Source of the DNA: Schizochytrium sp. TIO01
Lineage: Eukaryota; Protista; Bigyra: Labyrinthulomycetes
Length of the DNA stretch: 64,000 bases
NCBI GenBank assembly: GCA_004764695.1
Contig: SMSO01000032.1
Span: 2,294,001 to 2,358,000, forward strand
Reading direction: 5' to 3'
Made by a program: the position numbers and the translations under genes
Notes under the pieces: model-generated
Told to the model about the DNA's origin: nothing
Database searches by the model: none
What the model saw: the letters and a program-made list of their open reading frames with translations, nothing else
Shown here: positions 3,765-61,617 of the stretch, piece by piece
Position numbering within the stretch: position 1 is the stretch's first letter
Layout: every line of letters starts with the position of its first letter

Positions 3765-4727
3765 GGTCCATTCATACATTAAATCAATGAGTAAGAACAT
3801 CATTTTTACAGTTTTGATATATTCTATGCAACCTTTAATAGTGAACATTGCAGTGCAATCTTGATGATCTACTATCTTCTCGCCCTGGATGTTATGCTTT
3901 AGTTTGAATTTTATCCATACTTTATCTTCATGGTATTCATTGTTCACGTTATAAAAGCAATGCATGGACTTTTAGCTGTTCAAGGGCTAGGTCAATTTTG
4001 CATAAATGGTGGGAAGGGACATAAATCGTTTTATGATCAGACTTCGCATAGCTACGTCACCCTGCGAGAAAGAGGCATCCCAAAGCACAGGAATAGGAGG
4101 AGTTCGGCGTGCAAGATTGTTCATATGTCGGGTTCCAACTGAGACTGGCAAACACTTTCTAGCTCGCGTTGCTCACTAGAACTTTTGGATTAGAAATGTA
4201 AGCTTGGAGGGGTACACAGTAAGTTAATAATTGTATAAGTGTTTCTTTTATATATACTACTAGTTGTTCGGAGTATCGGATTTATATACCAAAGATCTCC
4301 CTGTGTTACCCATAATAGTAAAGTGCGTCCCTGTGCGAGCCAGCGTCTACACAGGTTTCGGATAAATATGTAAAATAGTTAACATGCATCTCGGATTAAT
4401 ACAAAACGTCTAGAATACCCAAGTGGGTACGCTGGCTTCCAGAGAGAGATTAAATTGCCGCGATTTTAGGAGCCGTCAGAAAGCGCCCAAATCAGGAGTC
4501 GTTGCGAAAAAAAAAGGGGCATTGAGGATTCACACTATGCTCCATAGTATCACTACGGCACTGATGCATGTATCGAAAAGGTGAGGAAAATGAACAGTAG
4601 GAATAATGGTAGATAAAGTCTATTGAATTCTATGAAGGTCGAGTTTTCTCGCTCTCTTGAGAAGGCAGTGGAGTGCCTAAAATGGCTACAAGTGAAATAA
4701 AATAAAATACTTTATAATGTCTGCATG

Positions 4728-7700
4728 TAGGATATTTTGTATAGCCTAGTTTAAGAGGGGAGACACAAGTGGACAATAGAGTTGCGAGGAAAAGAGCAGA
4801 AATTTGGGAGCAGATTAGTGAACTTGAGATAGATAACAGTGAAAGCGTAGTTTGACTCAAACTGAGGCGCATCAGACCCGAAACTGCGACCACCAAAAAC
4901 GCACTTCTAAAACAGCATAACCACGTTAGGTTGCCTGACTACATCCTGTTAGTAGCCAAGGTACAACTAGCGATTTTACTACCTCCTCACTAATCTTTCT
5001 TCTTGAAGGACTCGTGCCTTCTTGTAAACCGGTCTAACTGCATCTGATAGGCTAGGGAACCTATTATAGGCTTGCTGCCTAGGTTGCTTCTGAAGTCACG
5101 CGCATCCTGGCAGGCAAGCAAGAGATTAACACTGGGCGGCTTTCGCAGCCATCGTAGCTTGATCAGTCAGAGATTTTTTTGCTAATCAAAAAGTTCTGTC
5201 GTTGTTTTCAACTGGTTCCAAGTAGGACCGCAGGATAAGGGTAGTGTCTGGCGAGGATAAGCAATATTGGAAGAAAGCTAGGAATTGTCTACCCATACGT
5301 AAAGGTTTTTTAAGCTTTGGGGACGCCGATCTTCTTGTTTTTTGAGATTGGCTTTGTAGTGTCACTTTCACAAGATACCCTCCGAAAGCTTGAGTGATAA
5401 TTTCCAGAGACAATACAAGACTTTCATTGGACCCAATTTGATTGAGCATTCCTTGCTTCTGGCCAAAGTGAAGTTGAACTTCAAAAGTTTGGAAAATAAC
5501 AAGTGTCCAAGAGAAGTTCTAGGTGCGAAAAAGTAGCGGACCGAATCACCAAAGCACTTGAATAAGATTCCAGCTTGAGGCCAAGGCCCGGCAGACAAGC
5601 ACACAAACTCGCCTTCAGGATATTGCACCAAGATATCAGCGCTACAACCACGTTGTGTTGCATTCAATTTCCCTGTAACACAATTTGAGAAGCAACCGTG
5701 GCCATCGAATATCGTATCGACCTACCGGTACCCAATCGGCAACAACATTGGTTCTTCCTACGATCCTATCCGTCCTATTCTAGGGTATTAGCTACTTTGC
5801 ACGCACCAGAAACTGGAATTGTTCTTCTTGGATCTACTATTTCAGCAAGCAAAGCAGCCATCCAAGGTTCAACGTTCTGCAATTACCCACGCATCTTAAC
5901 TTCTCCATTTACCCAAGGTACAGGACTTTGATTTTAAGTGGTAGAAGTGCTTCAATTTGTCATCCCGCGAGCCAGCTGCAGAAAAAGTTAATCAAGGAAA
6001 CGACTGACTGCCCAGTGCCTTCACATTCTAGCCATTTCGAGGTAGTGATAGCAGTAGGTGCTGCTACGAATATCAAGCGTGTCTATTCCATCCAACCCTG
6101 GCAAAGCAACTTGCGAGATAATTCACAGGCCTCAACAGCTACCTAAAGCGGGAACCAGTGCCAGCGCTGCGCCAGCGCCAGCACCACCAGCTTAACAAGT
6201 CTTCAAGATCACCAATAAACCAGCAACAGCCCAAGCGCATCGAACACAAGTCTCGTCTCAAGTGAAGTACCCTTTTGGAGCAAGTCAGTGCCCTATTTTC
6301 TTCGTTTTCTCCTTTCTGTCACTTCCTGTGATCGTTCTGAGGGGAATCAGCACCTAGGCTAGCTAGCTGGCTAGCTATACCTCGCTACCTTTATAGAATA
6401 GCTGTTCTCAGTTCACAGAACCCATACGTAACCCAAATAGATCGTTCCGAGATTGGTCGGTGTGGAAAAGGACGCTCGTTGGAGTCTCCTGGTTGATTTG
6501 GTTGATTCGCGTCACCACTTTGGCATCCACTCCTCGAGGCGCAACCAGAGTCCTTGGAGAATAACCTGAAGCTTCTGGAGCCTGAGTAGAGGCCTTCTGC
6601 ATAAGCGTCGCGCTGCTTTGCGACCCCGCGGTCTCCTGAGAAGCGGAGTTCAAATCAATTAACCAACCTACACCGCGCCGTTCCCAGATCCAAGTGCTAT
6701 AGTAGTTTTCGGTAAAGGAGCCTTAGTCAGCCCCATCGCTTCTTGAGTTTCGAAGTTTCGCGTCGCGACGACCGCAGGCAGCCCAGCGATTCGTTGGAGC
6801 CAGGAAGCTCCCGTCGAGAAAGCGTGCGCATCGGTGCTCTTGAAGGCACGCCAACCAGCCAGCTAGCCAGCCAGCCTGCCTGCCTGCCGGCCTGGCCTGA
6901 GTCGAGCTCCAGCTTGCTTCAGCTCGAGCGGTCTGCAGGTTTTGGGAAAGAGCAAATCTGAAAATTGGGAATTTGAATTTCGAAATTTCGAAATTCGACA
7001 GTTTTGGCGTTCCTTCTCCTTCTTCTCCTCCTTTTCTTTTCCAGTTTTTTGAATTTCTGGAATCCGCGAGAGTGAGTGAGTTTTGAATTGCGAGTTTTGA
7101 ATTGCGAGTTTTGAATTGCGAGTTTTGAATTCGCCATTCAAATTTGCAAAGAAAGCTCAAGCCCAATTCAAATTCTGAGTTTCCAGGTCTGACTTCGGTC
7201 GATCAGAACTCGTTCGAGGAGGCCCACGGACCGACCTCGCGAGAGCAGAGCAGAGCAGAGCAGGCGAGGCAAGAGGTCCGCCCGCCCGCCCTTGCAGCGC
7301 CGCCCTTTGCTGGGGATCCGGGCCAGCTTCAAGTTGAGCACGTAGGCAGAAGAAGAAGAAGAAGAAGAAGAAGAAGAGGAAAGCTCCGTCGTTGACACGG
7401 ACCCGTAAACCTGCTTGAAGCTGCGACGACTACAGCGTCGCACTCGCTTGCTGCAGGCGATCCGGAGTGGCCAAGCGGGAGGGAGGGGCCAGAGGCAGAC
7501 GGGGAATCGCCGCGCCAGACCTGCCTGCACCTTAGCCTCGAAGAACGGAGAGAGCGAGAGTTGACCGGCGTTGACCCCTGATTCCAACTCGTTGTTGGCC
7601 ATCGACGTCGTCTTCGTTGTCCACAGACGGCTACTGCATCCAGGCGTGCATCTAGCTGGCCACGAAGCACATCGACACATCGATTCCGACGTGCATTCTA

Positions 7701-7892
7701 TCCGACGGAGCTCGTGTGGTCATCCGAAGGAGTCCGAAGGAGTCGCCAGGAACACCGAGGGCAAGAGGCGTTCGCGCTGCCAACACGAGGAAAGGCGCCG
7801 ACCTAGGATCCAGAGCTTTGTTGACGTATCATCGGCATCGCCGCTGCATTGATTCGAGTGATTTGGGAGCCAAGATAGCCAGAACCAGTCAG
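4728..7892 (+). other. Putative non-coding 5' leader exon 1 (AUG-free) of the Myb-like gene
   Basis: Manual scan finds no plus-strand ATG from 4728 to 7974, while CAT is frequent. The block ends at a perfect donor AG|GTAAGT (7893). Confidence 0.65.
7078..7133 (+). repeat. 14-bp tandem repeat (GAGTTTTGAATTGC) x4
   Basis: Units start at 7078, 7092, 7106 and 7120; the last is slightly variant. Confidence 0.95.
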
Positions 7893-9250
7893 GTAAGTAG
7901 GTAAGCAAGGAGAGCTTGGAGCTTGGAGGGGGAGGGCTTAGGAAGAAGCGAAGAAGCCGTGGAGAAGCGAACAGATGGGCGGCAACCGTGGCTTGGCAGG
8001 CAAGACGGGGCTCGTTAGCGAGCGAATGAGCGAGCGGGTGGGTGGGTGGGTGGGTGGGTGTTTCATGGTGTTTCATCTTGAACGCTAGCGACACGACGAT
8101 GCATCCTTTGCATGGACGTTTACAGGTTAGGCCCGGAATAGTCCGGATCTAAGCATGCAGGGCGATGGACCGAACCCGGTATCGACAGGTGCCTGTGGGA
8201 CTGCGGGGACCCTGCTCAAAGAGACGGAAGCGGAAAGGGGGAACAAAGGGGGACCCGCACAGACAGCTGCGGGAAGATGACCGTGCATTCCAGCTCGCAT
8301 AGTACCAGCCGGACTACCAGCGCGGTTTACTTCCCTCTTAGCCAGTGGAGGGATCTAGGAGGTAGAGAGGAAGAGGTGCTGCGGGAAAGACAGAGGGGAC
8401 CCGCTGAAGAAGTGCCTAAACAATGAGAACAAGTATCTACGCTGGATGGAGGTGGCCCTCTCAGGAGCAGCGCGTTGAGAGGAGAAGAGCCATTTGACAA
8501 GATTAGATGGTAGGCGAATGAATGACAGTTGCGCGAGTTGGCCACCTCGAAACTAGCTCGGTTCGGCCTCGAAACTAGCCCTGTTGTTTTGGTGGAGGGA
8601 AGGGAGATATTGGAGGCAGACGAGGTCATGGCTGAGCCGGCTGAAACAAATGGAAAACCAAGATAAGATTGTGATGGCGAATCTTTGGCGATAGTCTTAG
8701 TACAACTCTGTGTACGCGGTATGTACGTATAGTAGCAACGCCGGTCACAGCCGCTGCGGCGAGATTGCCCAGTGCTGGGTGAAGAAAGAAGCTACCATTA
8801 TGATGGTAGTAGGCACTGATTGTTAAATCATGTCAAGGTGAGGCGACAGGCAAAGAAAGGGCAGGGAGAGTGGGAGGGGCCTGACTAAGAGCAGACGTGG
8901 GACTGTTTTGGGGTTTTGTTTTTGCCAGGTTGTTCATTTGTTTATCTGCAGCTTACGCGAAGTCCATTGTCCTCGATGAGATCAGTTCACACGGAAGGGT
9001 ACCCACACACGCTCGAGTTTAGAGGTGTTCTGAAGCAGGAGACGGGTAGGCAGGAGCGGGGGGTTTCGACCTCGCTGGCTTTGCAAGGAGACAACGAGAA
9101 GTAGTGAAATATAGAGGTGACTTATGTAGTATAGAAAGTGAGGACTCGAAAACAGGGGAACAAGGAGGTGGGGAAAATAGAACAGGAAGCAAAGTAGCAG
9201 CGGCTTGCCGCACCCTTGAGCTGAAAAGAACTATAGACTAACCTAACCAG
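7893..9250 (+). other. Putative 5'-UTR intron (acceptor uncertain: 8951, 9250 or 9328)
   Basis: Donor GTAAGT at 7893 and branch-like GACTAAC at 9237-9243 followed by CAG. The same branch motif occurs in the RPL27A intron and APC10 intron 2. The segment contains about 20 ATGs, unlike its flanks. Confidence 0.6.
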
Positions 9251-10947
9251 CTATCACAAAGGAAGAGGGGATTGACTCAACATATCTGCACACAACAAGC
9301 TTTGCCACGTGCGGACTGATTTGTTCAGCCCGTCTCTGACCTTCAAACAAGGACGCACAGCATAGCCTTGAAACTCCCAAGGTGGAAGAACAAGGGGAAA
9401 TCGAGCTTGTCTTTCACTCTTTTATTTACCTGACTCTTAACCGAGATTAACACTCCTTATCGAAGTACTGGTATTCTCAACATTAGTCGCGGTGCTTTGC
9501 CTGTCAACCTACCCTCTTAGTGTTAATTATATCACATTGGACAGGGCGTGAACTCATACGAAGGTGGAAGATCGAACTATACGTAGCCTACCACTATTAG
9601 TACCTACCTGCTTTGGCGTTTTCTAATCTAAACTCTGAAAAGCAGCCAACATTGGCACTGCATATACCAACGATTATTATACCAACGATTATTGCAGATA
9701 GAGTGCTACAAGTTAACAAGGGACGGAAAATAATTAGTTGATTGTTTTCAAGTACGGTGCTGGGAGAAAGGGAAAGGGCCTGGTGCGCAGTTAGGATAAA
9801 TCATAGCAGTCACACGGGAAAAGGGATCGACTCGTTTATCGCTCTGGTCTCTTGAATAGCTCAGATAGAGCTGGCTGGCAGGCCACAAATCAATAAGACT
9901 AGCTATCTAACTGCAGCTTTCGCTGCAGACACGCCAGCGGGCAGATAGAAGCATCAGAAGATATCGAGTCCTTCTTGTTTGCATTTGTTGGTTCATTCAT
10001 AAAAAGACTCAACCAGTGAGGCAATCAGTTTGCGATCAACTGAATTGGTTATTTGCATAGGCACCCAATTTGAGTAGGACACTAGCAAAGTGTCAAAGGA
10101 GAAAAGGAAATTCCTTCGTTTAGTTTTTGAGTTAATTGAAAGATTTACACAAAGAAAGAAAGAAAGAAAGAAAGAAAGAAGAACGAAATCAGTCAGTCAA
10201 ACAGAAAACTAGAGTAGAAGCTCCCTGTAGCTAGTAGAACATCGTTTGCATTTCTCCAAGGCGGCAGACTCGCACCACCAGCTCGCGAATTGCAATCTAT
10301 TCCATTGACAGGCTCTGACTTGGATAGCGGCCAGCCTCCAGAGCAGTGTACAGGTTGTTCAGGCATATTGGATAGCAGAAGCGGCTGAACATTTAAAAAT
10401 AGGAGGTCGAAAGGTGCGGGTGCCTTGCTCATCTTGGGACTTGCTCTGCTACATAGTCTTGTGAAGGTGCGGGAAAACCAGAAAACTTAGCGATTTCGCG
10501 AGATTGAAGAGACAGATCGCAAACGAATAGTCAACCTATCGGTCATCATCAGGTTGGTCGTGAGCTTGAGGTGGTCTGAGAGCGCAGAGACACACCGCCA
10601 GAGGTGGCAGTCTAAGCAGGTAACGCACAATCAAGCACCAGGAGCAACAAAGCCGCGGCGAGAAGCGGCGTGCTCATCCTGAAGCACAATTTATTAGCAA
10701 CGACAACGCGAAAGTCGGGAATTCGAAGCGCAAACGGCATATCCAGCTTCAAGAACCCGTATCAAGCGGATTAATATCAACCGAAACGAACCAGAGTGGG
10801 CGCGTGACAGCAGGACCAGCAAAATCTGCCGTTATATTACCTAGAATTCGACACAGCACATCGTCCTACTCTGCGTCTTCGTCATCATCATCGTCTTCTT
10901 CTTCTTCTGACACAGCTCCTATCCAAAGAAAGGTTTTCCAACGACCA
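9251..10947 (+). other. Putative 5' leader exon 2 (AUG-free)
   Basis: No plus-strand ATG from 9127 to 10947. The first ATG afterwards (10948) is in frame with the long ORF. Confidence 0.65.
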
Positions 10948-12546
10948 ATGCTAGCAACGAGTGAGCAAACTGGATTTGAGGGACCTGTAACATCCATGCA
11001 GCCTCAACATCATCACCCAAATACTAACTTGCCTTATTCAGAGGACGACTGGTCCTTCGTTGCAGATCTGCTAGGCCGTCAAGAGGCAAGTGCCGCTGCC
11101 GCAGCTGTAGCTGCAGCCTCTCCTTTACGGTCTGAACAACAACAAATGCAATATCACCATCCGTTCCAGTCTCAGCATCAACAACAAGAATACGAAAGGA
11201 ACCCAGTGCAAGTTTCGTCAATGTCAATTTACGAATGGGAGTCATTGCGTCCGAACCCGCGTTTCTCAGCCGAGAGGAGACCCAGTAGCTCAAGCTCAGA
11301 CACATCTAGTACAACGAATAGCTCAGTCATCAATGCCAATCGTTCCAAAAATAGTGCATTGCTTTCAACCACAAGCGAAAAGTCTGAGTATACTGCTGCA
11401 CCTAATTGCGCCAATTCTTACGAAAATCGAGTTTTGTTCGACACTATTCGATACACAGGTATTCCTTCTCCCACTGGTGCTACGGCTGGTGTTGCCGTTG
11501 CTACAGCAGCCCGCACCGGCTCTTCTGCTGCTCAGATAATGACAGCAAGCTCTGGTCCTTCGCATTATCAAACGCATTTCTCACAGCACCAGTCTCCCTT
11601 TTCTGACCAAGATCCATATAGCCAACTTCGCCTACGCCACCCTCACCAGCAATATTCACAGCCTACTGCTAACCGGCATGCTGACGCTCTGTACCCCATG
11701 TCAGTGCAGACCGAGGACAGTTCCAGAAGCAAGAACAACCATATGTTTGCAAGGCGATCGTCTTCACCGAACAAACGTAAAGCACTTAATGAGGACGAAG
11801 ACGAGGGACATTTGCACGGACACGATGCATACGTGGTGTATGCTAAGGAGTCTTCTGTGCAAGCAGAGGGAGGCCATCAGACATCTCTTCCTGCACGTTC
11901 AACATCTACAGGTGCTATGAGTCGGATCAGCAAAAAACGTCGCAGCCTAGACCACATGGATTTAGATGCCGGAGATGTGGGTTCTGAGGCCCCATCTGAG
12001 ACAAGCTACACCTCTGCTGATGACCCTGTAAGGTATCCTGGAAGGACCCCTACCCAGGCTACTATGCCACACACCACTGGTACAACTCCAACGATAGCAA
12101 ATGCACAAGCACGTAAGCCCGTGGACCGGAACAAGAAGCCCTGGGAGGAAAAGGAAGAACGCATGATTCTTTATGTGGTATATTATTTTGTGGAAAAGGA
12201 CCTTAAGACTATTTCACAAATTGCACAACGGTGCGATATTGATAGAAGTATCCGGGCCATTGACAAGAAGCTAAAACGTTTGCTAAATTTTGAAAAGTGG
12301 AACTCGCGCGTTCAAACCGAGATCCAGTCTAATATCCGTACAATCTTTCGCGACCGCAACATCACATTTACAAAGGTACAACGTGACAAACTAGCGCAGG
12401 CTAAACGAGAGTTTGCAGCTGCAAATTACCCCCCCTTGCCCTGCGATGAGGATGCGGCTCACATGGCATCCTCTATTGGAGGAACTATGTCCGGCTCGGC
12501 TTCTGATATTAAAACGAAACCGCATTATCCTCCTGCAACGTGGTAA
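10948..12546 (+). CDS. Putative transcription factor: Q/S/H-rich disordered N-terminus and a C-terminal Myb/SANT-like HTH domain
   Basis: ORF 10804..12546 with first ATG at 10948. KKPWEEKEERMIL...ISQIAQRCDIDRSIRAIDKKLKRL matches the Myb-like W-x-x-x-E-E...IA...RS pattern. Basic NLS-like stretches are present (NKRK, KKRR). Confidence 0.7.
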   Translation: MLATSEQTGFEGPVTSMQPQHHHPNTNLPYSEDDWSFVADLLGRQEASAAAAAVAAASPLRSEQQQMQYHHPFQSQHQQQEYERNPVQVSSMSIYEWESLRPNPRFSAERRPSSSSSDTSSTTNSSVINANRSKNSALLSTTSEKSEYTAAPNCANSYENRVLFDTIRYTGIPSPTGATAGVAVATAARTGSSAAQIMTASSGPSHYQTHFSQHQSPFSDQDPYSQLRLRHPHQQYSQPTANRHADALYPMSVQTEDSSRSKNNHMFARRSSSPNKRKALNEDEDEGHLHGHDAYVVYAKESSVQAEGGHQTSLPARSTSTGAMSRISKKRRSLDHMDLDAGDVGSEAPSETSYTSADDPVRYPGRTPTQATMPHTTGTTPTIANAQARKPVDRNKKPWEEKEERMILYVVYYFVEKDLKTISQIAQRCDIDRSIRAIDKKLKRLLNFEKWNSRVQTEIQSNIRTIFRDRNITFTKVQRDKLAQAKREFAAANYPPLPCDEDAAHMASSIGGTMSGSASDIKTKPHYPPATW

Positions 12547-13492
12547 TTGAAAGCATACACATCATGGCCTTTGGAATAGTCTTCTGAACTGATATATTAT
12601 CTCTTCTCATTTCTTTTTTATGAATTTTGATACTCTTTCATGGTCATCTCAATACTCTAGAAATCTGATTTGAGGCCTTCCAATTCGTTAATCAACATAT
12701 AGTTGTTGTCTTCGAATGTGAACCCAAATTTTAAAACAAATAAATAATAATAATTGAGTATCTCAGCATTCTTCATGATATAGATTGACAGACAGTAGAT
12801 TCCGCTCTGTTTATGTTTTGGAGCGGGCGAGCTTTTCTTTACCATGATTTGCATCAGGAAAGTAAGTAAAAGAACAAAATGCGCGAACAAGTGACGTCCT
12901 CACACTCTGCATATGACTACCTACTTATATGAATATAAATACCTGTAGACCTGTCAAAAGAGTTTTTTTTGTTTTCGCATTTTGCTCTAGACTTTCTGTG
13001 GAATACAGAATTCAGGTGCAACGCAGCCTGGTCGCTTTATCCTCACCTAGCCTTCTCACCGTGGACTGGTCGATTAAAAATTAAAATCTGCAAACTTTGA
13101 CTGCCTACCGTCACACTGACATTCCCACTTGAAAGCCACACTCTTGATTTCCATCCTTATAGGTCGATGACTTATTCTAATTGCTCTTGATGGTCTTTAC
13201 ATAGTTTGTGTTACAACGATACCATTTACGTAGCTGTAGATATTCAAGAGCTTATAATACCTCATTTCTGTAAAATGTTATACTTTAATATATAGTTTGT
13301 GCATATCTTAAAAGACCACATAATTAGAGGCCGTGGAAAAAGCTGCCCATTCTAACTACCCCATGTTCGTTGCTTAATTCTAATTGTTGCTTCTGAATAG
13401 TAGGTAGATAGGTAGATGCTACCAGGCGGTCTGCACGCAGACGCGAATACTCCATCGCTTGCGGGGCCGTGCGGGCGTCAAGAGTATAAAAA

Positions 13493-15961
13493 ATGAGCAA
13501 TGGCGACAGCTCAAAGGCACAGGGCGTGTCTCGTGTGCTCTGCATAGATTTGAGCAGCAACAAAAACGCTTTCGATGTGCCAAGGATGCTGGCACCAAAG
13601 CCCAAGGTGAGCAAGGTGGCTCCAAAGGCAGCAACTACAGGATCGGCAGCAACATCTTCTGCTATATCGTCAAAGTCATCAACGTCGTTGTCCTCAGCTT
13701 CTACTACTCAGGCAACCCAGAATTTAGAAGGGTCATCCTCAGGTGCTGGAAAGAATTCACAGAATCTAGCTGCAAGTTCGACGACTTTAGCCTCCGGGCC
13801 CAACGCCAGCCCGCTGGACCCTATGAAACGCATGGGTCTTGGAGATTCAATGGCGCGCCAAGAGGGTGCTCTGTCAGGTGGAGCACTGAGCACAGTCATC
13901 GCGAACCTTGAACAACGCTATTGCTCAGGGTATATGAGTGAAGATGGATTCGAAGATAATGACTTCATGGACGTGGAGGAGGATGACAATGATGCATCTC
14001 GCAAGAAGCAAAAACGTACTCCTGCTCGCCAGCGAAAAGCTAATAAAGAAGAATTGGAGTGGTTAGAAAGTGGAGAAGGTTTTCTTGCGGAGGAGTTTGA
14101 GGAGGACGAAGAAGATGTCGAACGACGTGGATATTATGAAAATGCACTCAAGTACAAAGATGAGGAATTCTATGTCCACCGAGGCCCACTGCTAACGCAA
14201 TCACTTCGCAAAGAGGTGTCTAAGAAAATGGAACAGGACCGCATACGAAAGGAAAAACGTAAACTTAACAGTATGCGTCAAAACACAGATGATTCCTTGT
14301 CTACTAAAAATGTCGAGAAACTGAAGAAAATGGTTCAACCAATCATGGGACATGTGGGTAAAGCTTATGCGAAGGCTGAGGCCAAATTGCAAACTCCAGA
14401 GGCAGAGGTCAAACCAATTGACCTATACACAAGGGAACTTGATACTATTTTGAGAAACTTCTTTACTAAGAAGAAAATTAAAAAGCTGCCCACAGCGCAT
14501 CTCAATTTTGTGTACGAGGAAGTAAACAAGGCTTTCAAGGATCAACCATTGGCAGACTTCAAATCACACCTCAAGCGGGCTTCCCACCAATTCCAAATTA
14601 TGTCACTGCGCAAGAAACATAACGAGGAAGTACGCGAGCTTGTTCAGAGCCTTAAAAAGCGTGGCATTGAACTCAATCCAAATAGTAAATTTGTGCGTCA
14701 AGTTGAGAAGGCAAGTGCTAAAGCAACTGCTGATGATTCTGCAAATCGGTCTGGTACCGCAAAGCCTGCACCTGTACATCCGTATGGGTTTGAGATCTGG
14801 GCAAGAGTGTTGACCCGGCCAGATGGTGTGGATGACGATATTCTTGAAAAACTTTACTTTGGTGATCTCGATGTTGCCACGCGTGATGGCACAAATGATT
14901 CCACCCCTCGCATCGAATCTCCACCAACAACATGGGCGGCCTTACGCGAGTCATTTATCAAAACTGTTAAGTCTTTAGAAGAGAAACAAGAGGGTCAACT
15001 CAAGGAGAAAGACCGTTCCACACGGGCCATGTGTAAGGGCTTTCTTCGCAGAAGTGATGAACTCAGTGGGCAAGATGTCGCAGAAGGAGAACAAGCCAAA
15101 CCAGCATTCTTCTGGGATCGGAAGTCAGCCAGACGCGTGCGCGTTGTTGGAGAGTCTCACAAGGGCTTTTTGAAGTGCTGTAACCAAGTATGGAAACGCG
15201 AGGATAAGTTGTTTGGAAAACTAAAGACACAATGTCCAGATCAGGACACACTCAAGAAGGAGCTCGCTGATATATGGCCTCTTCGAGTGATGTCTGGCGC
15301 AGAAATCGGTGCTCTTATTCACAAATCAAGGCTCGTAGCTTTCAAACCAAGCCACAAGGCCACTGCGCAGTCATCGTCTACTTCGGCTAGAAAAACTGCA
15401 ACTGGCGCAAATGCAGGCTCCAAATCCTCAGGGAATGTTCCTCCTTCATCTGAGGCAAATACCAAATCAAAGTCTAAGTCGAATGGTTCTAACAAAACCT
15501 CCAACCAACCCGATGCCTCTAAAAATGCAGCTGATACAAACAAATCTAATAAGGCTAGTTCCAAAACTACTGAAGCTGCACCTAAGCAAGCAGACAAGCG
15601 TAAACTTGGTGATGCTGAGGTCGCAGGTGCGCAAGAACCTGCAAAGAAAAAACGAGGTAGGCCAGTCCAAAGCAAGATGCCTCCCAAGGCGCTTGCAAAT
15701 ACCTTTCCTTCCGTCGTTTTCAAAGCGAAAGACTTTATTGTGAAAACATCGGGGCCAAAAAAGAAGACAAAAGGAGAGCAAAAGCAACCAGCAGAGAAAC
15801 TCAAGCCTCCCAAGAAAAACTCAGGGAAAGGTTCAGCTTCAGCAGACGACCAGGAAGATATCTCTGCGGACGCAGATGTTGACATTGCAGAGGAGACAAA
15901 TACAATTGGGGATGATCAAGAAATTGACAATCAAAGTACAATAACTGAGCCTGACCCATAA
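13493..15961 (+). CDS. Ubinuclein/HPC2-like histone chaperone subunit (HIRA complex), divergent
   Basis: 822-aa ORF. LSTVIANLEQRY followed by an acidic tract and EEFYVHRGPL resembles the HUN/HRD region (consensus-like xVIExIERxY...GF[YF]xNxGxL). The Lys-rich tail has an AT-hook-like KRGRP. Confidence 0.55.
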   Translation: MSNGDSSKAQGVSRVLCIDLSSNKNAFDVPRMLAPKPKVSKVAPKAATTGSAATSSAISSKSSTSLSSASTTQATQNLEGSSSGAGKNSQNLAASSTTLASGPNASPLDPMKRMGLGDSMARQEGALSGGALSTVIANLEQRYCSGYMSEDGFEDNDFMDVEEDDNDASRKKQKRTPARQRKANKEELEWLESGEGFLAEEFEEDEEDVERRGYYENALKYKDEEFYVHRGPLLTQSLRKEVSKKMEQDRIRKEKRKLNSMRQNTDDSLSTKNVEKLKKMVQPIMGHVGKAYAKAEAKLQTPEAEVKPIDLYTRELDTILRNFFTKKKIKKLPTAHLNFVYEEVNKAFKDQPLADFKSHLKRASHQFQIMSLRKKHNEEVRELVQSLKKRGIELNPNSKFVRQVEKASAKATADDSANRSGTAKPAPVHPYGFEIWARVLTRPDGVDDDILEKLYFGDLDVATRDGTNDSTPRIESPPTTWAALRESFIKTVKSLEEKQEGQLKEKDRSTRAMCKGFLRRSDELSGQDVAEGEQAKPAFFWDRKSARRVRVVGESHKGFLKCCNQVWKREDKLFGKLKTQCPDQDTLKKELADIWPLRVMSGAEIGALIHKSRLVAFKPSHKATAQSSSTSARKTATGANAGSKSSGNVPPSSEANTKSKSKSNGSNKTSNQPDASKNAADTNKSNKASSKTTEAAPKQADKRKLGDAEVAGAQEPAKKKRGRPVQSKMPPKALANTFPSVVFKAKDFIVKTSGPKKKTKGEQKQPAEKLKPPKKNSGKGSASADDQEDISADADVDIAEETNTIGDDQEIDNQSTITEPDP

Positions 15962-20705: not shown

Positions 20706-21630
20706 ATGGCAACTCCACAGAGCCAGCGGCCTGCGCACGCAACGCCGCAAACCCCAGCAGCAGCAGCAGCAGCAACCTCGATTGAGGTTCTCAGCGAGAC
20801 TGAGAAGCGAGAAATCGGAGACGAGGTAAGTTGGCTTTGCCCTCTGAAGGCATCGTCAGGCTCAGCACTTATAGCATTTCTGAAGAGAAGGAGAAGGGGT
20901 CAGATTTTGAGCGAGACGATTAATTCTAATGAGAAGATATGCAAAATCGTAAAGGATCTCCGCACAAATAGAAGGAGACAACTAACATTGTAATGCTGTT
21001 CGTCAATGGATTGGTTTTCCAACATACAGGCTGTTTGGTCACTTTCTACAGCGAAACCCGGCAACGGAGTCGAGCAGCTTCGTGACAATAATTTTGATTC
21101 GTAAGTAGTCTAACTTGAGTAGATATTAAAAACAAGACTAACGTTGAAGAGTCCACGTTCATAAACGATGAGGATGATGCGTACATGTGTGCCTTCTCAG
21201 GTATTGGCAGTCCGATGGACAACAACCGCATCTTATCAACATTCAATTTCACAAAAAGATGAGCATAGCAGAGGTTGCACTCTATTTAGACTACAAGCAC
21301 GATGAGAGTTACACGCCTAAGAAGCTGTGCTTCAAGGCAGGGTCAACATTTCATGATCTTGAAAAGGTGCATCAATTAGAACTAGAGGAGCCTCATGGGT
21401 GGGTTTACATTCCACTGGGCCAGATCGTAAATCATGGAGGCCAGGGCGTCTTACGCACTCACTTTTTACAGATTGAAATTCTTGCTATGCACCAGAATGG
21501 TCGCGATACTCATATTCGTCAAGTAAAGGTCTTTGGACCTCGTCAAACTGCAGTGCATCGAATGCTCCATGCTGCTTCTGATGGCGGATTTTCCTCCATT
21601 GATTTCTCTCAGTTTTCTTGTGTACGATAA
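20706..21630 (+). CDS. APC10: Anaphase-promoting complex subunit 10 (DOC1); exons 20706-20825, 21030-21100, 21201-21630
   Basis: GT-AG introns 20826-21029 and 21101-21200 (GTAAGT donors, CTAAC branch points) join in frame to give [46 protein letters not shown]...DESYTP...HQNGRDTHIRQVKVFGP. Confidence 0.96.
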
Positions 21631-28141: not shown

Positions 28142-29060
28142 AGTTATCAATATGTGAGTTTTGGTTTCTCAAATGCGCGGCGAATCAAAGAAAAAAATGA
28201 AAAGAGCAGGTGTTCTTGAGCAGCCAGGTCTACAGAAGCCAATCTTTCGAAGCCGCTATAGTAGATCAAGGTACCTTCGAAAGAGGGACGGCCAATCAAG
28301 ATCGGCAAGGAGGCCACTCCTCTCAAACTTCGCTGACGGCCTATTTACCTGCCTACTTGCTTGTTTATTCACCTGCCCAGAAATAGCTAGCAGGAGGCGA
28401 TCACGTGCCCGATGATGTTCTCAGCCTTCCCTGCGAGTACTTTGCAGCGGCGTAGAGTTGTTGAAGTGAAGGAGTGACCGATGAAGTAGTAGAGGTTGCC
28501 CAGGGCGTGAAAACTATAGATTCTCGAAATTCCAAATTTCGAGGATCGAGTTTCCGAGCGTTTAGCCTCCGGTGAGGGACGCTTCGATATCGTAGGGGAG
28601 CGAAGTGTCCTAAGGGAGGGAGGCGGGCAAGAAGAGGCTGCGAGCAGCGGCTCGCTCTTTCTCTGCCGCGAGGGAGAAGGAGGGAGCAGGTGGGCTCGGT
28701 TCGCTTTATTTTGCGTGCGTGTCGGCTCAGCTCCTTTCTATGCTTCTTTCTTTTCTTTTCTTTCCCCAAAGCCTATTCAACAAAACAATACGAAAAACAA
28801 GTTTTTACTTTTTATTCTGTTCAACTAAAACTTCGAAGTTTTATTTTAACTTTATTCTCATTTAAAGTTCAATTTTAAGTTTAAGTTTAAGTTAATAAAC
28901 TAAAGCAAAACAAAACAAAACAAACAAAACAAGTGTCGGTCTGTCTATGCCTACTAAATAGCAATCCTGTCTGTTCAAGCGCACTTATACCACTAACTAC
29001 GATATAGAACAGATTGAAAAGAAAGAAAAAAAGAGCAGCACATTTCGGAAAGAGCCACCA

Positions 29061-33263: not shown

Positions 33264-33396
33264 GTATGTATGTATGTATGTATGTATGTATGTATGTATG
33301 TATGTATGTATGTATGTATGTATATTGATTGATTCATTCATTCATTCATTCATTCATTCATTCATTCAAACCGACAGAGAGGCTAAGCGCTGCTAC

Positions 33397-33461
<65 letters not shown>
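33264..33461 (+). repeat. Compound microsatellite (TATG)n-(TTCA)n-(TAG)n
   Basis: Direct reading. Confidence 0.95.
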
Positions 33462-35529
33462 CTAATTAGGTGTAGAGAGACCTAAGAGGCGCCTAGCTCC
33501 AGCTAGCCAGCTCCTGGAGGCGAAAAAGCGAAGAGCAGGGATTTTGAAATTCAAATGTCACCGCAGGAGCTTCGCAGGAATCTTGAAACCCTTCGACAGT
33601 GGTAGAACTTGAAGGATTGAGGATTGGCTGATCGGTCAGGCACCCCGTGGACGAGCGAGGCGGGCTGACCAACCGCCCTGGGCACCTGGCGTCCTGGCGG
33701 GCGGGAGGCTTTCCGGGCGAGCGGAGTTCGTCTCGAATGGGCGGATGATCTTTGTGCGACGTATTCCAAGGTCTGGGCTGGCTGTTTGAAAAGGGCAAAA
33801 CGACAGAAGTATGGATTTTCTTTCTAACCTCCCTCCCTCCCTCCCTCCCTCCCTCCCCGCCGAGTCGAGTCGAGTGGAGTGGAGTGGAGTGAGTGCTAAA
33901 GTCTCGCTCGGAGCAAGCTCTCTCTGGAGGTTGTGACATTCTTTGGGCCCATCGTTTCGGGGCCTTTCATCCTCTGAATCCCAGCCAATAGGTATCCATC
34001 CTGCGAGTCGATCTCAATGACTGCGTCAACCAGCTTGTGGAAACCATCATCCACACCAGATCCTCCAATTCTTCGATAATCTCTTCTGCAAATTCGCTCC
34101 CCGCGATTGCGAAGGCCGGGTACCTATCGCCGCAGGGTATTCGTGACGACCACGATCAGCGATCGCGCCAAAGCAGAGGCGGTTACCCGGCTGGAGTCGG
34201 AGTATTTCCGAGCAATGGTTGGAGCTGTCAATTGGCGTGCCCTCCGTGGCCATTGAAAAGGTTCGCTTTTTTGTGGAGAAAAACCAGGGCAGCTTCTTCT
34301 TTTGCGGGCTCAAGAGCAGGCAAGCAAGAGCTCGTGATCGGTCGCTCCTTACGTCGTGGCCGGACTCCAAGTCACAGCAGCCACTTGCTGTCATCTGCTG
34401 CGCTGCCGTGCTGCTGCTGTTGCTCCTGCCGCTCGATATCCACACGCTGCTCGAGTTGGCACCACGAGAGTCCCAGAGCGTGTTCCCCATGGCGTTTGGG
34501 CTGCGGCTTCAGGGAAAAGATGGAGCCGCCCAGCAGACAAAAGCTACGGCGAAGAGGTACCTTGCATCTCCTAAGCTCTGCCTGCATACATGTGAAGGAA
34601 ACGAGAGAAGCTTAACGAGCGGGCTTCAAGAACTGGTTTCGACGCACGAGTGGCCGGCCCATCTTTGGTGGCAGCTATAGGGGCGGACACCCATTGGATG
34701 GAGAAACGATCGAATAGGTATAGGCGAACTTCGAATGATTGGGTGCATATGAAGGTAGCGTAACCTGTGTCAAGAATGTCGTAAATATCCATGTCTCATT
34801 CATGATCTTGTGAACGAAACCCTTGCAAGTGCTTTCATTTTATTTTAATTAAAACAAAAAATTAAAAAGTTAATTAAAAAAGCAAATTAGTGTTTTTAAA
34901 ATCAACAAAATTACTTACTTTTCTGTTTTTTGTTTTGTTTTGTTTTTTGTCTCGTTGAAAATAATATTTAAAAAGGAAGCTTTTACTTAGGTACTAGGTT
35001 CTTTGATCATTCATTACGCAGTGGGTAGATAGATAACTCTTCTGTGCACAATCTTTGCTTTGTTTACAATGAATGCTGGTTATCGCATAACTGTCTGAAA
35101 CCAAGCCATGATCACGGCAAGATTAAGCAACCAATCAATCAATTAATTGGTTAATTGCTCGCTGTACACCTGCGATCATTAGATTCACATCGTCCTCGCA
35201 AGTCCTAATTCTGTCATGACGAAAGCGTCAATCCCATAGTAGTGCAGGTATTCACTCGCAAAAGGTAATGCTTTGCGATCTTTTTCTCTTCTTTTCATTG
35301 AAAACTAAAGCTTGTGTAAAATAACCAATGCCAAATCAATCAATCAATCAATCAGTCAGTCAATCACTCCGTAGTATGGTATAGTACGAGCTCTGCCTGA
35401 TCACGCGCTCGCTCGCTTACAAACAAACGAACGCTCTATCTAACCTGCTGCCAAAATCCACGAAACCGCAACGCCTGCACAACCCATTTTCCTGCACGTC
35501 GAGAGAGCGGTAACTCAGGGGGCCCAGGG

Positions 35530-39624: not shown

Positions 39625-40035
39625 CTTGCAGTTGCAAATTAATGTAACACAATTCAGCTACTCAAAAAGGCTGCACAATTTTCACGCACCTTGCGTGCGC
39701 CAAGCACCTCAAATTGCTTCTGCAACTCCACGCTGCCGCAACCCGTTTCTATTTCGGCCTCTTTTGGATGATCGTTTTATATGGTATTCTGTATCTGTAT
39801 ATCTGTATATATACTAGCTCTGTTCTCCTTCGCTGTTGTTTTTTCCCACTGCTCTCGCGCCCAACAGCGAAATGCTCGCTCCAGAGTCGCCGCTACAGAG
39901 CCGCCGCACAGACTGTGGCGCGTTCAAGACGCCTCGGAGGCCTACCCGCCGTACACGGAGCCGCGGAGGCAGCCGGAGAAGCGCGCACGAGCCCGCTCGC
40001 CCAGCGCAGAGATCAAGGTCTGTTGCGGACCAACT

Positions 40036-40117
40036 ATGACGAGTAAAAAAGAAGCAGAAAAAGACGAATACTGAGCATGACGAGTAAAAAAGAAGCAGAA
40101 AAAGACGAATACTGAGC
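40036..40117 (+). repeat. Perfect 41-bp tandem duplication
   Basis: ATGACGAGTAAAAAAGAAGCAGAAAAAGACGAATACTGAGC x2. Confidence 0.95.
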
Positions 40118-44949: not shown

Positions 44950-46953
44950 CCAGAATGTTACGCAGCGGAGCCTTGAGAGTAGTTATTCTCATCTTCAAAG
45001 AGATGAGAGTACGCTTGTTGCGCGCTTCAACTCTCAAAAACTCATTAAAGTTCTTCGTGAAATTTATTATGAACTTACTGCATGTACTATGATTCCTGTA
45101 CCTCGTCAAGGCCCCCCATCTCCACCGCCTTTATTCAAAGCCTCTCAAAAGTCTCCTATTGGAAAGGTGAAAGCTACTGCAGATTCACAAGCGGATATTG
45201 GAGGTAACGAGGAAGGCAGTTCTTATCAAGGTATTCCAGGAGCTGCTAGCCAGCTTAGCAAATATAGCCAGGAGTCTATATCAAGCAATGAGCCATACCG
45301 CTAGTCAGAGAAGCTGGTAGGCTAAGAAACTATGTGCATCCTACATTTTATCATTCAAACATATTATTAATCTTTGGCTTATTAAAAAAAAAGTTAACAA
45401 AACTAGGTATAATAAAAGACAGGGTAATATAGAACAACCTGTAGACCAAGTCCTGAATAAAAAATTTATAAATCATCCACTGATAGAATTGAATACAAAA
45501 TACTTACAATAATAGCCATAAAAGCTAGCGTGCATGGCAACTTGAATTGTAAAGGCACGATCAATGAGACTTCGCTTTTAATAATCTTTGTTTGTATGTT
45601 GTTCACTTTCCTACGAGCCAAGGGACAACTGTCATTGCTAGGCCACGCTGGACGGCCTTCGACAGTGCACGCAATACAACAGATAGTCACGAGCGAGCTC
45701 TGACTCGAGGTTCATTTGGGTGTCACAAAATATACACAATGTACACGAGCTGGTACAGTCCCAATTACCTCCCCAAGAACATTATTCTAAGTTAATCTTA
45801 AAGCTTGGCTTTTTCCCTTTGCTGTTTAAAAGAAAGCAGCGTGAAACAAACTCTGGCAAAGTTACATAACCTACTGCGAAGCTTGCATCACCTAGTAGTT
45901 TCCACCTTTCTGGCTAGACCTAACATATCCTTTGACAAGATTGCAGCACGTGTCTACTCATGCGAGGTAGACGTCATCGTCGTTCCATCAAAGAGGCAGC
46001 TGTCGAGATCATCAGAACTACGTCCCTTCTGAGCTTTGACTTTACAAAGCACACGCAACGGATGTCCTCGCCTCGGTCCGACAGAGCCCACTGAGTGATT
46101 GACTCACTCACTCACTGACTCCAAGACCTCATCTCCCTCAAAGCCCTCCATCGAAACGAGTTCCTCGCTAGCCTTAAGTCCAATAGCGGCCAACGAGGTG
46201 ACCGAACACGCGTTTCGGATGGGCACTCTCCCAACGCAGTCCCTGAGGAGTCAATCCGCATCTGTTATGGTGTTGCGGTCTCGAGTTCTGATTGTAGAAC
46301 TCAGCAGCACTGGTCACTCAGACCGTCTGAGGTCTTAGGAATCACTGAAGGAAGGCCCAATCGCGACGTGTCCCTATTGGTGGCGTATGAAGTGCTAGAG
46401 GGGCAATTACCAGGAGAGCGGAATGAAAGGAAGAAAGAAGGGAAGGAAGGAGGTCGTAGCGAAGCATTAGGTAATGGTAGAGGTGGCCAGAACGATGTAT
46501 TGTGATGGTCATTACATTACAATGATGATTATGGATGTTCCGAAGAGTTATTAGCTTCTGTCTACATAGTATGTACATGGGAGACTTCTGAAGAAGAAGA
46601 CCTGTGCGTCTCGGAGATCAAAACCTCAATTGAGGCTGGGTCTCGGAGCAAGCAAGCTGGCAAGGGCGAGGCCTATCAAGGAGCTGAAGGCAGAAGTGCT
46701 CTTCTTACTGCTACGTCTTGCTACTGTGGTTAGTGAAGGGTCCGCTAAGGGACAAGTTCCTAGTGAACTCAATCAGACACTAGTACGGGAAACCTGGCTT
46801 TGACGCCAAGCTTAGCAGCGAAAAGGACGAACAAAACTGAAAAGGCTAAGCCAGCAGTTCGTGGAACTTGCCTACAGCAAAATACATCTGGGAAGCAAAC
46901 CCATTTTACAGGTCTAGTTGGTTTGAAGTCTCGCACACGCCTCCTGAAGCAGA

Positions 46954-59330: not shown

Positions 59331-60621
59331 TCTTTTTGGAGTGTCAAAGAGACTAAACTTTGCTTTGGGTCGAAGAGAAGAAGAAACGAAACTCGCGCAT
59401 CGAATGAAAGCGAGAAACTGATTCAAGGAATCCTCTTGCATGCCGATCCTTCGCTCGTCTCCCGTGGAGGAGGTGATGAACGAAGAAGATGCCCTCACAC
59501 CACACAGCAAGCAGCCTATGTGTGTCGATGAGCAACGCGATGGAAATTTTGCGATTTAGAGCAATACATACATACATACATACATACATACATACATACA
59601 ATAAATAGATGGGAAGGAAAGAAGATGCATGTAGTGCAATGTAATGTAATGCGAATGCGAATTGACTGATGGACAATTCGTTCATCACCACGTCAAGCAG
59701 GGCGTGGGTTTATGGTGAAATCCATATTGGCCCACATCTTCTTCGCCGCAAACGCCTCGCCAACTTGCTCTCCGGGTCCTCCTCCGCACGCGAGTCGTGA
59801 ATTGAAGTCCGAGTCGTTGCTGTCTCATTCTCTCATTCTCTCATTCTCTCATTCTCTCATTCATTTGTTTCTGTTTCTGTTTCTGTTTCTTTCTCTCTCT
59901 CTCTCTCTCTCTCTGTCCATGTCACTCCTACATCATCACCCTAGCAGTCCTACAGACAGACAGCAACAGTATTGTCTCCTCTTCTTTCTCCTTTCATCAT
60001 TGTTATTGGCAAAAGCAATTATTTAAAATGGCTGCTCTCTCTTTACTCTCTTCTCTCTCTCTTCTCTCTCTCTTCTCTCTCTCTCTCTCTCTCTTTTCTG
60101 CCTCTTCTCTCTCTTTCAAGCTCGTTCTCCTCTCATCGAAGCGCCTCTCATTGACTTTTTAAATTGACTGTTATGCCGGAATTTTGTGAGGGGAAAGGGC
60201 CCCCCACTACTAGCCCACCAGTATCATATACTGTAGGTGGGCTTGAAACTTGGCGAGAACAGGAAATGCGGTGATGATTATGAAGAAGAAGAGTGCACTG
60301 GTACCTCCTGTGGCTGTAGAGTAGTATCTACTATTTGCTAGCTAGGATGCCGAGTGACGATTTGAAAAAACGATTGTTTTCTTTTTTAACATGAAATGTT
60401 AGATAACAAGTTTTCACGGAAGAGGATGTTTTGTTTTGTTTGTCTGTTTATTTGCTATTGTGACGATGGATTGATTGTTGAAGAAGTTGTTATGCTGTAG
60501 AGTGAGTTATTTTGGTTTTGGTTTTTTTCAATCAATGGAAATGTTTTTTTTGTTGTTTTTTTTGTTGTTTTTTGTTTTTTTCTGTTTCTGTAGCAAAGAA
60601 CAAGAACACGAAAAAGAAATG

Positions 60622-61617
60622 GTAAAAGAATAGATAAAGTAAGTAAGCAAACAGACCAAAGCGAGGCGACCACGGACGAAACCTCCGCCGCCGCCTCGCT
60701 CAACGCCGGCGGGCCGAGCACAGACCCGCGAGCGAGAGCTCTGAGACCCAGCGCCAAGGAACCTCCACCGGCGTTTGCTCTGGAGCGGAGGTAGGGCCTT
60801 TGCCACTGCCGCGCGCGCATCCATCGGCTTCGCTGCAGCTCGCTGCAAACGGACCGCTCGCTGCTCCTTTATATATATTATAATATATTATCTTCATATC
60901 GTCAACGAAGGCACGTGGTGGACAAGGGTCGCGCTAGCAGCCTACCTGGTCAAGGACTGCGAGGCATACTCAGAGGCGTCGGCAACTGCTCCCGCGAAAA
61001 CTTGCTACTGCGAGTCGTGTTGCGGAGACAACTGGGAATTTGAAGGGTTTTGAGTTTCTTTCTTCCTCCCTGGTTTTAGGATACTTTTCTTAAGGCACGT
61101 ACTCCTTGAGCAGAGTTTTGGAGGCACGCATCGAAGGTCAAATCTAGCACACAAGACGCGCGCTTCAAGTTGCTTCTTAAATACACCTGTGGAAACGACG
61201 TTGGTGGGGTGACAGAAAGTATTGTCTAGGGGTGCACGAAGACCTGCAGAACTGGACTGCCTGGGAAAAGAACGAAGTACTTCGGAGCTTGTACTGGATA
61301 TACATTTATATATATATATATATATATCAGCTTTATTCCTTGCAACTCCAAGTGGCGGGTAACCCACGTAAACCCGGATATTTCCCAGTAATTTGAGGTC
61401 CCTCGAAAAGCTTATAAAAGCTATCCCGAGAGGCATCATTTCTGTGAAATTAGCTCAGCTTTATAGCAGCTTTATATATCCATATTTTAAGAGTCTGTTA
61501 TAGTGTGCTCGAGAGCGCACTTTACGATTAAGGTGCTCGCTTAGACAATCGGAGGACGTGGAGAAAGTTTGCTGTCACCACTATTGGCACAAAGAAAGGA
61601 GTAAAACCACAGCCACG
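60622..61617 (+). other. Putative AUG-free 5' leader of PP2A B55, about 1 kb
   Basis: No plus-strand ATG between 60622 and the start codon at 61618 (manual scan). Confidence 0.55.

Follow-up and report, generated by a model that had tools for sequence, protein, structure and literature searches.

This analysis concerns a 64,000-nucleotide (nt) stretch of the genome of the thraustochytrid Schizochytrium sp. TIO01 (contig SMSO01000032.1, positions 2,294,001 to 2,358,000 of the forward strand), which we call the window and by whose positions all features are numbered, and, within it, the 6.2 kb of DNA upstream of an open reading frame (ORF) of 532 codons that begins at position 10948. On the plus strand, this upstream DNA contains two long stretches without a single ATG (desert 1 and desert 2), separated by a middle block in which ATGs are present. 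The features of the locus, in their order along the plus strand, are as follows.

4712 to 4718 (+): TATA-like sequence, TTTATAA, immediately ahead of the final upstream ATGs (4717 and 4725), suggesting a transcription start at about 4740 to 4760.
4728 to 7892 (+): candidate leader exon 1, which is ATG-free, noncoding, single-copy, and without an Rfam family.
7893 to 9250 (+): candidate leader intron, with a donor (CAG/GTAAGT) at 7893 and all 22 upstream ATGs, at chance-level density.
9250 (+), CTAACCTAACCAG, and, as an alternative, 9328 (+), TTTGTTCAG: candidate acceptors, proposed from their splice-site motifs.
9251 to 10947 (+): candidate leader exon 2, which is ATG-free and runs up to the start codon at 10948.
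10948 to 12546 (+): coding sequence of 532 amino acids (aa) in one exon, with a strong coding score and a transcriptome match.
12100 to 12447 (+): conserved C-terminal domain of five helices, possibly a Myb/SANT-like DNA-binding fold (predicted).

Desert 1 extends from 4726 to 7974 between ATGs at 4725 and 7975, and desert 2 from 9125 to 10947 between ATGs at 9124 and 10948; both contain zero ATGs. Local base composition predicts 50.8 ATGs for 4728 to 7974 (3,247 nt) and 31.0 for 9127 to 10947 (1,821 nt), whereas the reverse triplet, CAT, occurs 36 times in desert 1 and 28 times in desert 2. The middle block (7975 to 9126) has 22 ATGs against 20.6 expected, i.e., the number anticipated by chance. 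An original prediction, made by a model from the DNA letters, had reported the two ATG-free blocks, the strand specificity of the loss, and an intervening block of about 20 ATGs, and had offered a strand-specific ATG count as its check: the count yields zero in both blocks rather than the background frequency, and the earlier numbers are off by no more than one or two. The Poisson chance of such absences is roughly e^-51 for the 3,249 nt of desert 1 and e^-31 for the 1,823 nt of desert 2. Among all 64 trinucleotides, the longest gap anywhere in the window is the one that ATG leaves at desert 1 (3,250 nt), the runner-up among the other triplets being 1,176 nt. With both deserts pooled, a first-order Markov expectation gives 0 observed against 54.6 expected ATGs (z = -7.4), and the next lowest triplet has a z of -3.0; ATG is the sole depleted trinucleotide across both deserts, where the near-cognate start codons CTG, GTG, TTG, and ACG show no depletion. 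The loss of ATG is therefore real, strand-specific, and far beyond chance.

We scored coding potential by codon usage per 150 nt, with training on 39 long ORFs from a contiguous sample of 264 kb (the window plus the 200 kb upstream of it). The middle block has the lowest plus-strand score of all blocks (-9.4, with a maximum of 0.2), whereas the coding sequence at 10948 to 12546 averages +8.3; as such, the middle block is noncoding on the plus strand. Plus-strand coding signal is likewise absent from 4728 to 7892. Because the middle block has no coding potential, 10948 is the only functional start downstream of desert 1, and ribosomes coming from desert 1 could reach it only if the 22 ATGs were removed, which is exactly what an intron would do.

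Sequence motifs at the edges of the middle block are consistent with such an intron. Only 2 of the 14 GT sites between 7700 and 7975 are donor-like (CAG/GTAAGT at 7893 and TAG/GTAAGC at 7901), and that at 7893, 82 nt upstream of the block's first ATG, is the only consensus donor nearby. At the other end, GACTAAC occupies 9236 to 9242 and CAG occupies 9248 to 9250, so that donor, branch point, and acceptor are all located where the original prediction had put them. The best acceptors after the last ATG of the block are at 9250 (two CTAAC motifs, then CAG) and 9328 (CTGAT, then TTGTTCAG), and, as read from the sequence, neither the junction of 7892 with 9251 nor that of 7892 with 9329 makes an ATG. 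A further acceptor that had been suggested, at 8952, is not supported, as two ATGs (8976 and 9124) would then remain within the leader. With either of the retained acceptors, all 22 ATGs fall inside the candidate intron, and the predicted mature leader contains no AUG-initiated upstream ORF (uORF).

Across the sample, 5 of the 19 deserts that end at an ATG not belonging to a gene have GTAAG followed by T or A within their final 150 nt, versus 5.5% for all ATGs (binomial P = 0.003). Only four candidate introns were found in coding sequences across the 264 kb, too few for a splice-site weight matrix; one of them, a candidate intron of 646 nt (window 20826 to 21471, plus strand), has GAG/GTAAGT and TTTTTACAG at its ends. 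Judging from sequence, coding regions seem to be intron-poor, and leaders may hold introns more often. An AG-free tail is absent from the candidate leader intron, whose longest gap between AGs is 91 nt. A search of 4000 to 13500 against Rfam returned no family of note, and the leader shows no sign of selection for or against RNA structure, its mean z of about -0.1 not differing from the values for the intron, the coding sequence, and the antisense strand.

Long ATG-free stretches are not confined to this locus. At a threshold of at least 450 nt, the 264-kb sample contains 29 ATG-free gaps (14 and 15 on the two strands), versus the approximately 2 per strand expected from the measured density of 0.017 ATG per base, which makes them about seven times commoner than chance; desert 1 is the longest of the 29. 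Ten of these gaps end exactly at the ATG that opens an ORF of 250 to 2,082 codons, although ATGs that open an ORF of at least 300 aa make up only ~0.5% of all ATGs in the sample (48 of ~9,070). Ahead of the 45 non-overlapping ORFs of at least 300 codons, the median ATG-free distance is 158 nt, versus ~41 nt by chance, with 44% of these distances above 200 nt and 18% above 450 nt. Examples from the window include the following.

60620 to 61617 (+): ATG-free stretch of 999 nt, ending at the first ATG (61618) of a 497-codon ORF.
28142 to 28860 (-): ATG-free stretch of 720 nt, ending at the first ATG of a 2,082-codon ORF.
39625 to 40077 (-): ATG-free stretch of 454 nt, ending at the first ATG of a 322-codon ORF.
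46578 to 46953 (+): ATG-free stretch of 377 nt, ending at the first ATG of a 717-codon ORF.

The arrangement of desert, few ATGs, and desert before a long ORF is seen at two other loci. At the first (L011:2263-5719, plus strand), an ATG-poor leader of 3.4 kb has three ATGs and then a 294-codon ORF, and an interval of ~295 nt from GTAAGT (L011:3134) to TTGCAG (~L011:3428) encloses two of the three; the third ATG lies 21 nt after a TATAAA, which hints at an internal promoter. At the second (L017:6664-8349, minus strand), deserts of 876 nt and 805 nt are split by two overlapping ATGs that follow GAG/GTAAGA. TATA-type motifs that overlap the last ATG, as at 4712 to 4718, occur at two other desert starts. 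Two further stretches have endings of their own kind: a 982-nt ATG-free stretch at L008:1556 (plus strand) ends at a two-codon uORF (ATG TGC TGA) whose stop overlaps the start codon of a 793-codon ORF, 8 nt downstream, and a 574-nt stretch in the window (33365 to 33939, minus strand), with a long (TAC)n microsatellite near its end, terminates at ATGAATGAATGA and is probably in part a compositional effect and not a leader.

Long AUG-free leaders are thus a general property of this thraustochytrid genome. The original prediction had gone on to propose a translational-control system dedicated to the gene at 10948; given the 29 gaps, 10 of them ending at long ORFs, what is observed is a genome-wide habit and not a control private to this gene, with ATG-free leaders of 0.45 to 1.8 kb preceding many unrelated genes in the sample.

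Desert 2 ends at the start of a gene that is in use. The first ATG after it is indeed 10948, as had been predicted, and the 532-codon ORF that it opens is expressed, since its protein is present in a transcriptome: the MMETSP0960 transcriptome contains proteins with 99% identity to it, with near-identical versions also in Logan contigs (one 99%-identical protein, P0001, is on a Logan contig of 7,810 nt). A 580-aa database version (P0006) starts at a GTG at 10804, 48 codons upstream of the ATG, and so the public contig that encodes it (from JGI/IMG; either RNA or DNA) reaches at least 144 nt into desert 2. For desert 1, a protein-database search with a spurious 170-codon minus-strand ORF gave no match and is uninformative on contig coverage. 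The next in-frame ATG within the coding sequence (10996, codon 17) has T at position -3, and one transcriptome model (P0004) starts there; leaky scanning to a shorter isoform from 10996 is possible.

The N-terminal three quarters of the 532-aa protein are of low complexity, and only the C-terminal ~104 residues are conserved, with 63% identity to a protein of Mucochytrium quahogii. The domain has five paralogs in the genome (L025 to L029), with ATG-free distances of 118 and 225 nt where the flanks are readable. An exhaustive HMMER search found 45 representatives with this domain in public data (a Mucochytrium-like relative, P0009, is on a contig of 8,959 nt), and no relative turned up when metagenomes were scanned with the protein alignment. 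Invariant positions of the family are W15, L35, R49, R52, R60, and W67, and helix 3 is basic (RAIDKKLKR). Pfam has no match to the 532-aa protein at an E value of ≤0.01 and no family in any of 41 aligned sequences (the domain from the window plus 40 relatives), and a sequence search of the PDB gave no match below an E value of 0.1. An AlphaFold2 model of the domain has five helices (predicted local distance difference test score [pLDDT], 92), for which Foldseek returned no match at an E value of ≤0.001. The best fold matches reach a Z of at most 6.1, none of them significant. Those found by VIA-align include a GT-1 trihelix (Z, 5.1), an R2R3 MYB (Z, 4.7; root mean square deviation, 2.1 over 48 residues), and c-Myb R1 (Z, 4.6), as well as TRF1, LUX, and ARR1, intermixed with winged-helix and unrelated helical proteins; the Myb, trihelix, and SANT matches have a Z of 4.4 to 5.1, and all matches are below the caution line of the method (Z, 8). 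The label "Myb-like" that had been attached to this gene is, as such, a reasonable guess at the fold, made weakly from the model, and not a family assignment. The C-terminal domain itself defines an unannotated family that has no Pfam model.

These observations can be accommodated by a single model, in which the 6.2 kb upstream of 10948 would be a transcribed 5′ leader and not intergenic DNA. The transcription start would lie downstream of the TATA-like box, a short way past the final upstream ATG (4725), and an intron of ~1.36 kb (from 7893 to 9250 or 9328) would be spliced out, such that the mature mRNA would possess a leader of about 4.85 kb (3,165 nt from 4728 to 7892, or less if transcription starts at ~4,745, plus 1,697 nt) without any AUG, along which a 40S subunit loaded at the cap would scan through to the AUG at 10948. 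Purifying selection against upstream start codons would maintain the ATG-free state; since this selection would act on the exons and not on the intron, the intron would stand out as an island of normal ATG density. The locus would then represent an extreme case of the long, strictly AUG-free leaders present throughout the genome.

That the ribosome would have to traverse several kilobases is not in itself an obstacle: yeast 40S complexes scan at 10 to 20 nt per second and hold this rate on longer leaders (PMC11446271), and yield depends only modestly on leader length itself (PMC12415969), which makes scanning over this distance physically plausible; at these rates, one passage of the leader would take 4 to 8 minutes. 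That desert 2 is scanned leader is very likely. That both deserts belong to one spliced, scanned transcript, with a leader of ~4.85 kb, is something we would put at a probability of roughly 0.6, and the start site, the splicing of the middle block, the joining of both deserts on one mRNA, and scanning as the selective agent are all inferred from the ATG pattern and the motifs described above. The giant spliced leader that had been predicted is thus upheld with respect to the ATG loss, the end of desert 2 at the start of an expressed ORF, and the noncoding block flanked by a donor and acceptors, and is unsupported with respect to the dedicated control system, the Myb-like family, and the acceptor at 8952.

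Several observations weigh against this model. Neither GTAAGT nor CTAAC is enriched genome-wide, and one GTAAGT would fall within the final 150 nt of a desert by chance in ~5% of cases; the acceptor is ambiguous between 9250 and 9328; a TATA-like ATATAG precedes the ATG at 9124, where a second promoter is possible; and the start codon at 10948 is in a poor context, carrying C at -3 (as well as at +4), in a genome sample in which A occupies -3 in 32 of 48 long ORFs. By the main rival explanation, there would be two promoters or two transcripts, and the working mRNA would start just after 9124, with a leader of ~1.8 kb. Leaders of 0.5 to 1.8 kb are the common size in this genome, the ATATAG is 15 to 20 nt before the ATG at 9124, other deserts (including the internal desert at L011) likewise start on TATA-like motifs, and the acceptor at 9250 is somewhat far from the last ATG (126 nt; P, ~0.12). 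We nevertheless regard this explanation as rather unlikely: no reason is known why an RNA along which ribosomes never scan to a functional start should lose all ~51 expected ATGs on one strand, the block that follows desert 1 is without coding potential, and a consensus donor is present exactly where an intron must begin. Under this explanation, desert 1 would be either an alternative, conditional first exon or a separate cytoplasmic noncoding RNA kept AUG-free against translation and nonsense-mediated decay. The models are not exclusive, because, if the upstream exon is used for this gene at all, the two-promoter explanation merges into that of a single spliced leader.

Other explanations account for one desert at a time or for none. 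Part of desert 2 could be coding, with a non-AUG start somewhere in 10624 to 10947 and an N-terminally extended protein, an arrangement that is compatible with a leader elsewhere: the frame of 10948 is open for 108 codons upstream (to a stop at 10621; P, ~0.007 from the local stop frequency), its coding score beats those of the other two frames, and the context of the AUG at 10948 is weak. However, the scores over this extension are only +3.5 and -1.0 per 144 nt, versus +9.5 in real coding sequence, open runs of 88 to 120 codons also arise by chance in desert 1, and the Mucochytrium relative shares no N-terminal sequence, such that we consider the extension improbable. Still less probable is that desert 1 is the leader of a small gene of its own, in which the ATG at 7975 would start a microprotein of 37 codons (7975 to 8088). 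This ATG, the first after the 3.25-kb desert, has A at -3 and G at +4, but its whole-context score is merely average (-0.38, versus 1.37 for real genes), no 150-nt segment of the block rises to coding scores resembling those of real coding sequence (never >0.2, versus a mean of 8.3), and a leader of 3.2 kb would be odder still for an ORF of this size. Finally, the deserts could be devoid of function, produced by chance or by composition, a proposition that the ATG counts, triplet gaps, and Markov test refute and to which we attach next to no credence. Short microsatellites inside the region are all that speak for it; tandem repeats make up just ~300 nt of it, too little for low complexity to account for the deserts, and the stretch is single-copy in the genome (a 64-Mb assembly of 37 contigs). 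Moreover, the expectations of 51 and 31 ATGs already use the local composition, ATG alone is depleted while its antisense triplet is near normal, and the same pattern recurs before other ORFs.

If the spliced leader is real, its intron could act as a switch: when spliced, the mRNA would be translatable, whereas retention of the intron, or use of an upstream promoter without splicing, would leave 22 AUGs to block the main ORF. We view this as distinctly unlikely, but were it true, splicing or promoter choice, and not reinitiation after uORFs, would set the translation of a putative DNA-binding regulator, and the ribosomes of this thraustochytrid would routinely scan kilobases (here, ~4.85 kb, the longest AUG-free cellular leader known to us). 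More broadly, the genome-wide pattern would mean that the first-AUG rule is very strictly enforced in this organism, that selection is efficient enough to restrain hundreds of near-ATG sites, and that 40S subunits are able to traverse several kilobases productively. It would offer a natural test bed for scanning, including its processivity, its directional versus diffusive movement, and its dependence on helicases. On the practical side, the ATG deserts of this genome mark transcription units, leader introns, and true start codons with nothing but the DNA sequence to go on, so annotation would gain from them, and "promoter" DNA cloned upstream of Aurantiochytrium genes may in fact be leader.

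Among known systems, the closest is the general depletion of upstream AUGs in eukaryotic 5′ untranslated regions (UTRs), which, across 478 species, takes the form of an observed/expected ratio below 1 that is partial and strongest near the coding sequence (PMC7889888). Like the pattern described here, it is a strand-specific shortage of AUGs from cap to start that reflects the first-AUG rule of scanning and from which introns are exempt; here, however, the ratio is zero over ~4.85 kb and zero or near zero over 0.5 to 1.8 kb before many genes. The apicomplexan Toxoplasma gondii is likewise a protist whose leaders greatly exceed those of yeast, plants, and animals in length: its 5′ UTRs, with a median of 713 to 800 nt, are among the longest known, but 90% of them have upstream AUGs (median, 5), and selection against these is weak (PMC12338608). 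The thraustochytrid is in the opposite regime, its long leaders being strictly AUG-free. Introns in 5′ UTRs are, similarly, GT...AG intervals within a leader that are free of the constraint on exons and have ATGs at the chance rate, with the difference that the intron proposed here is deduced from the ATG pattern and splice-site motifs alone. The uORF switches of GCN4 and ATF4 also have a long leader before a regulatory protein (here, a putative one), but the uORFs that define them are absent from the predicted mature leader and would occur only in mRNA that kept the intron. In the library that we searched, we found no description, for thraustochytrids or for another organism, of complete AUG absence on a kilobase scale, gene after gene. 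That selection disfavors upstream AUGs is textbook knowledge, but as a statistical trend that spans a few hundred bases; what is notable here is its scale and its genome-wide habit, and the complete absence of AUGs over kilobases is a different regime.

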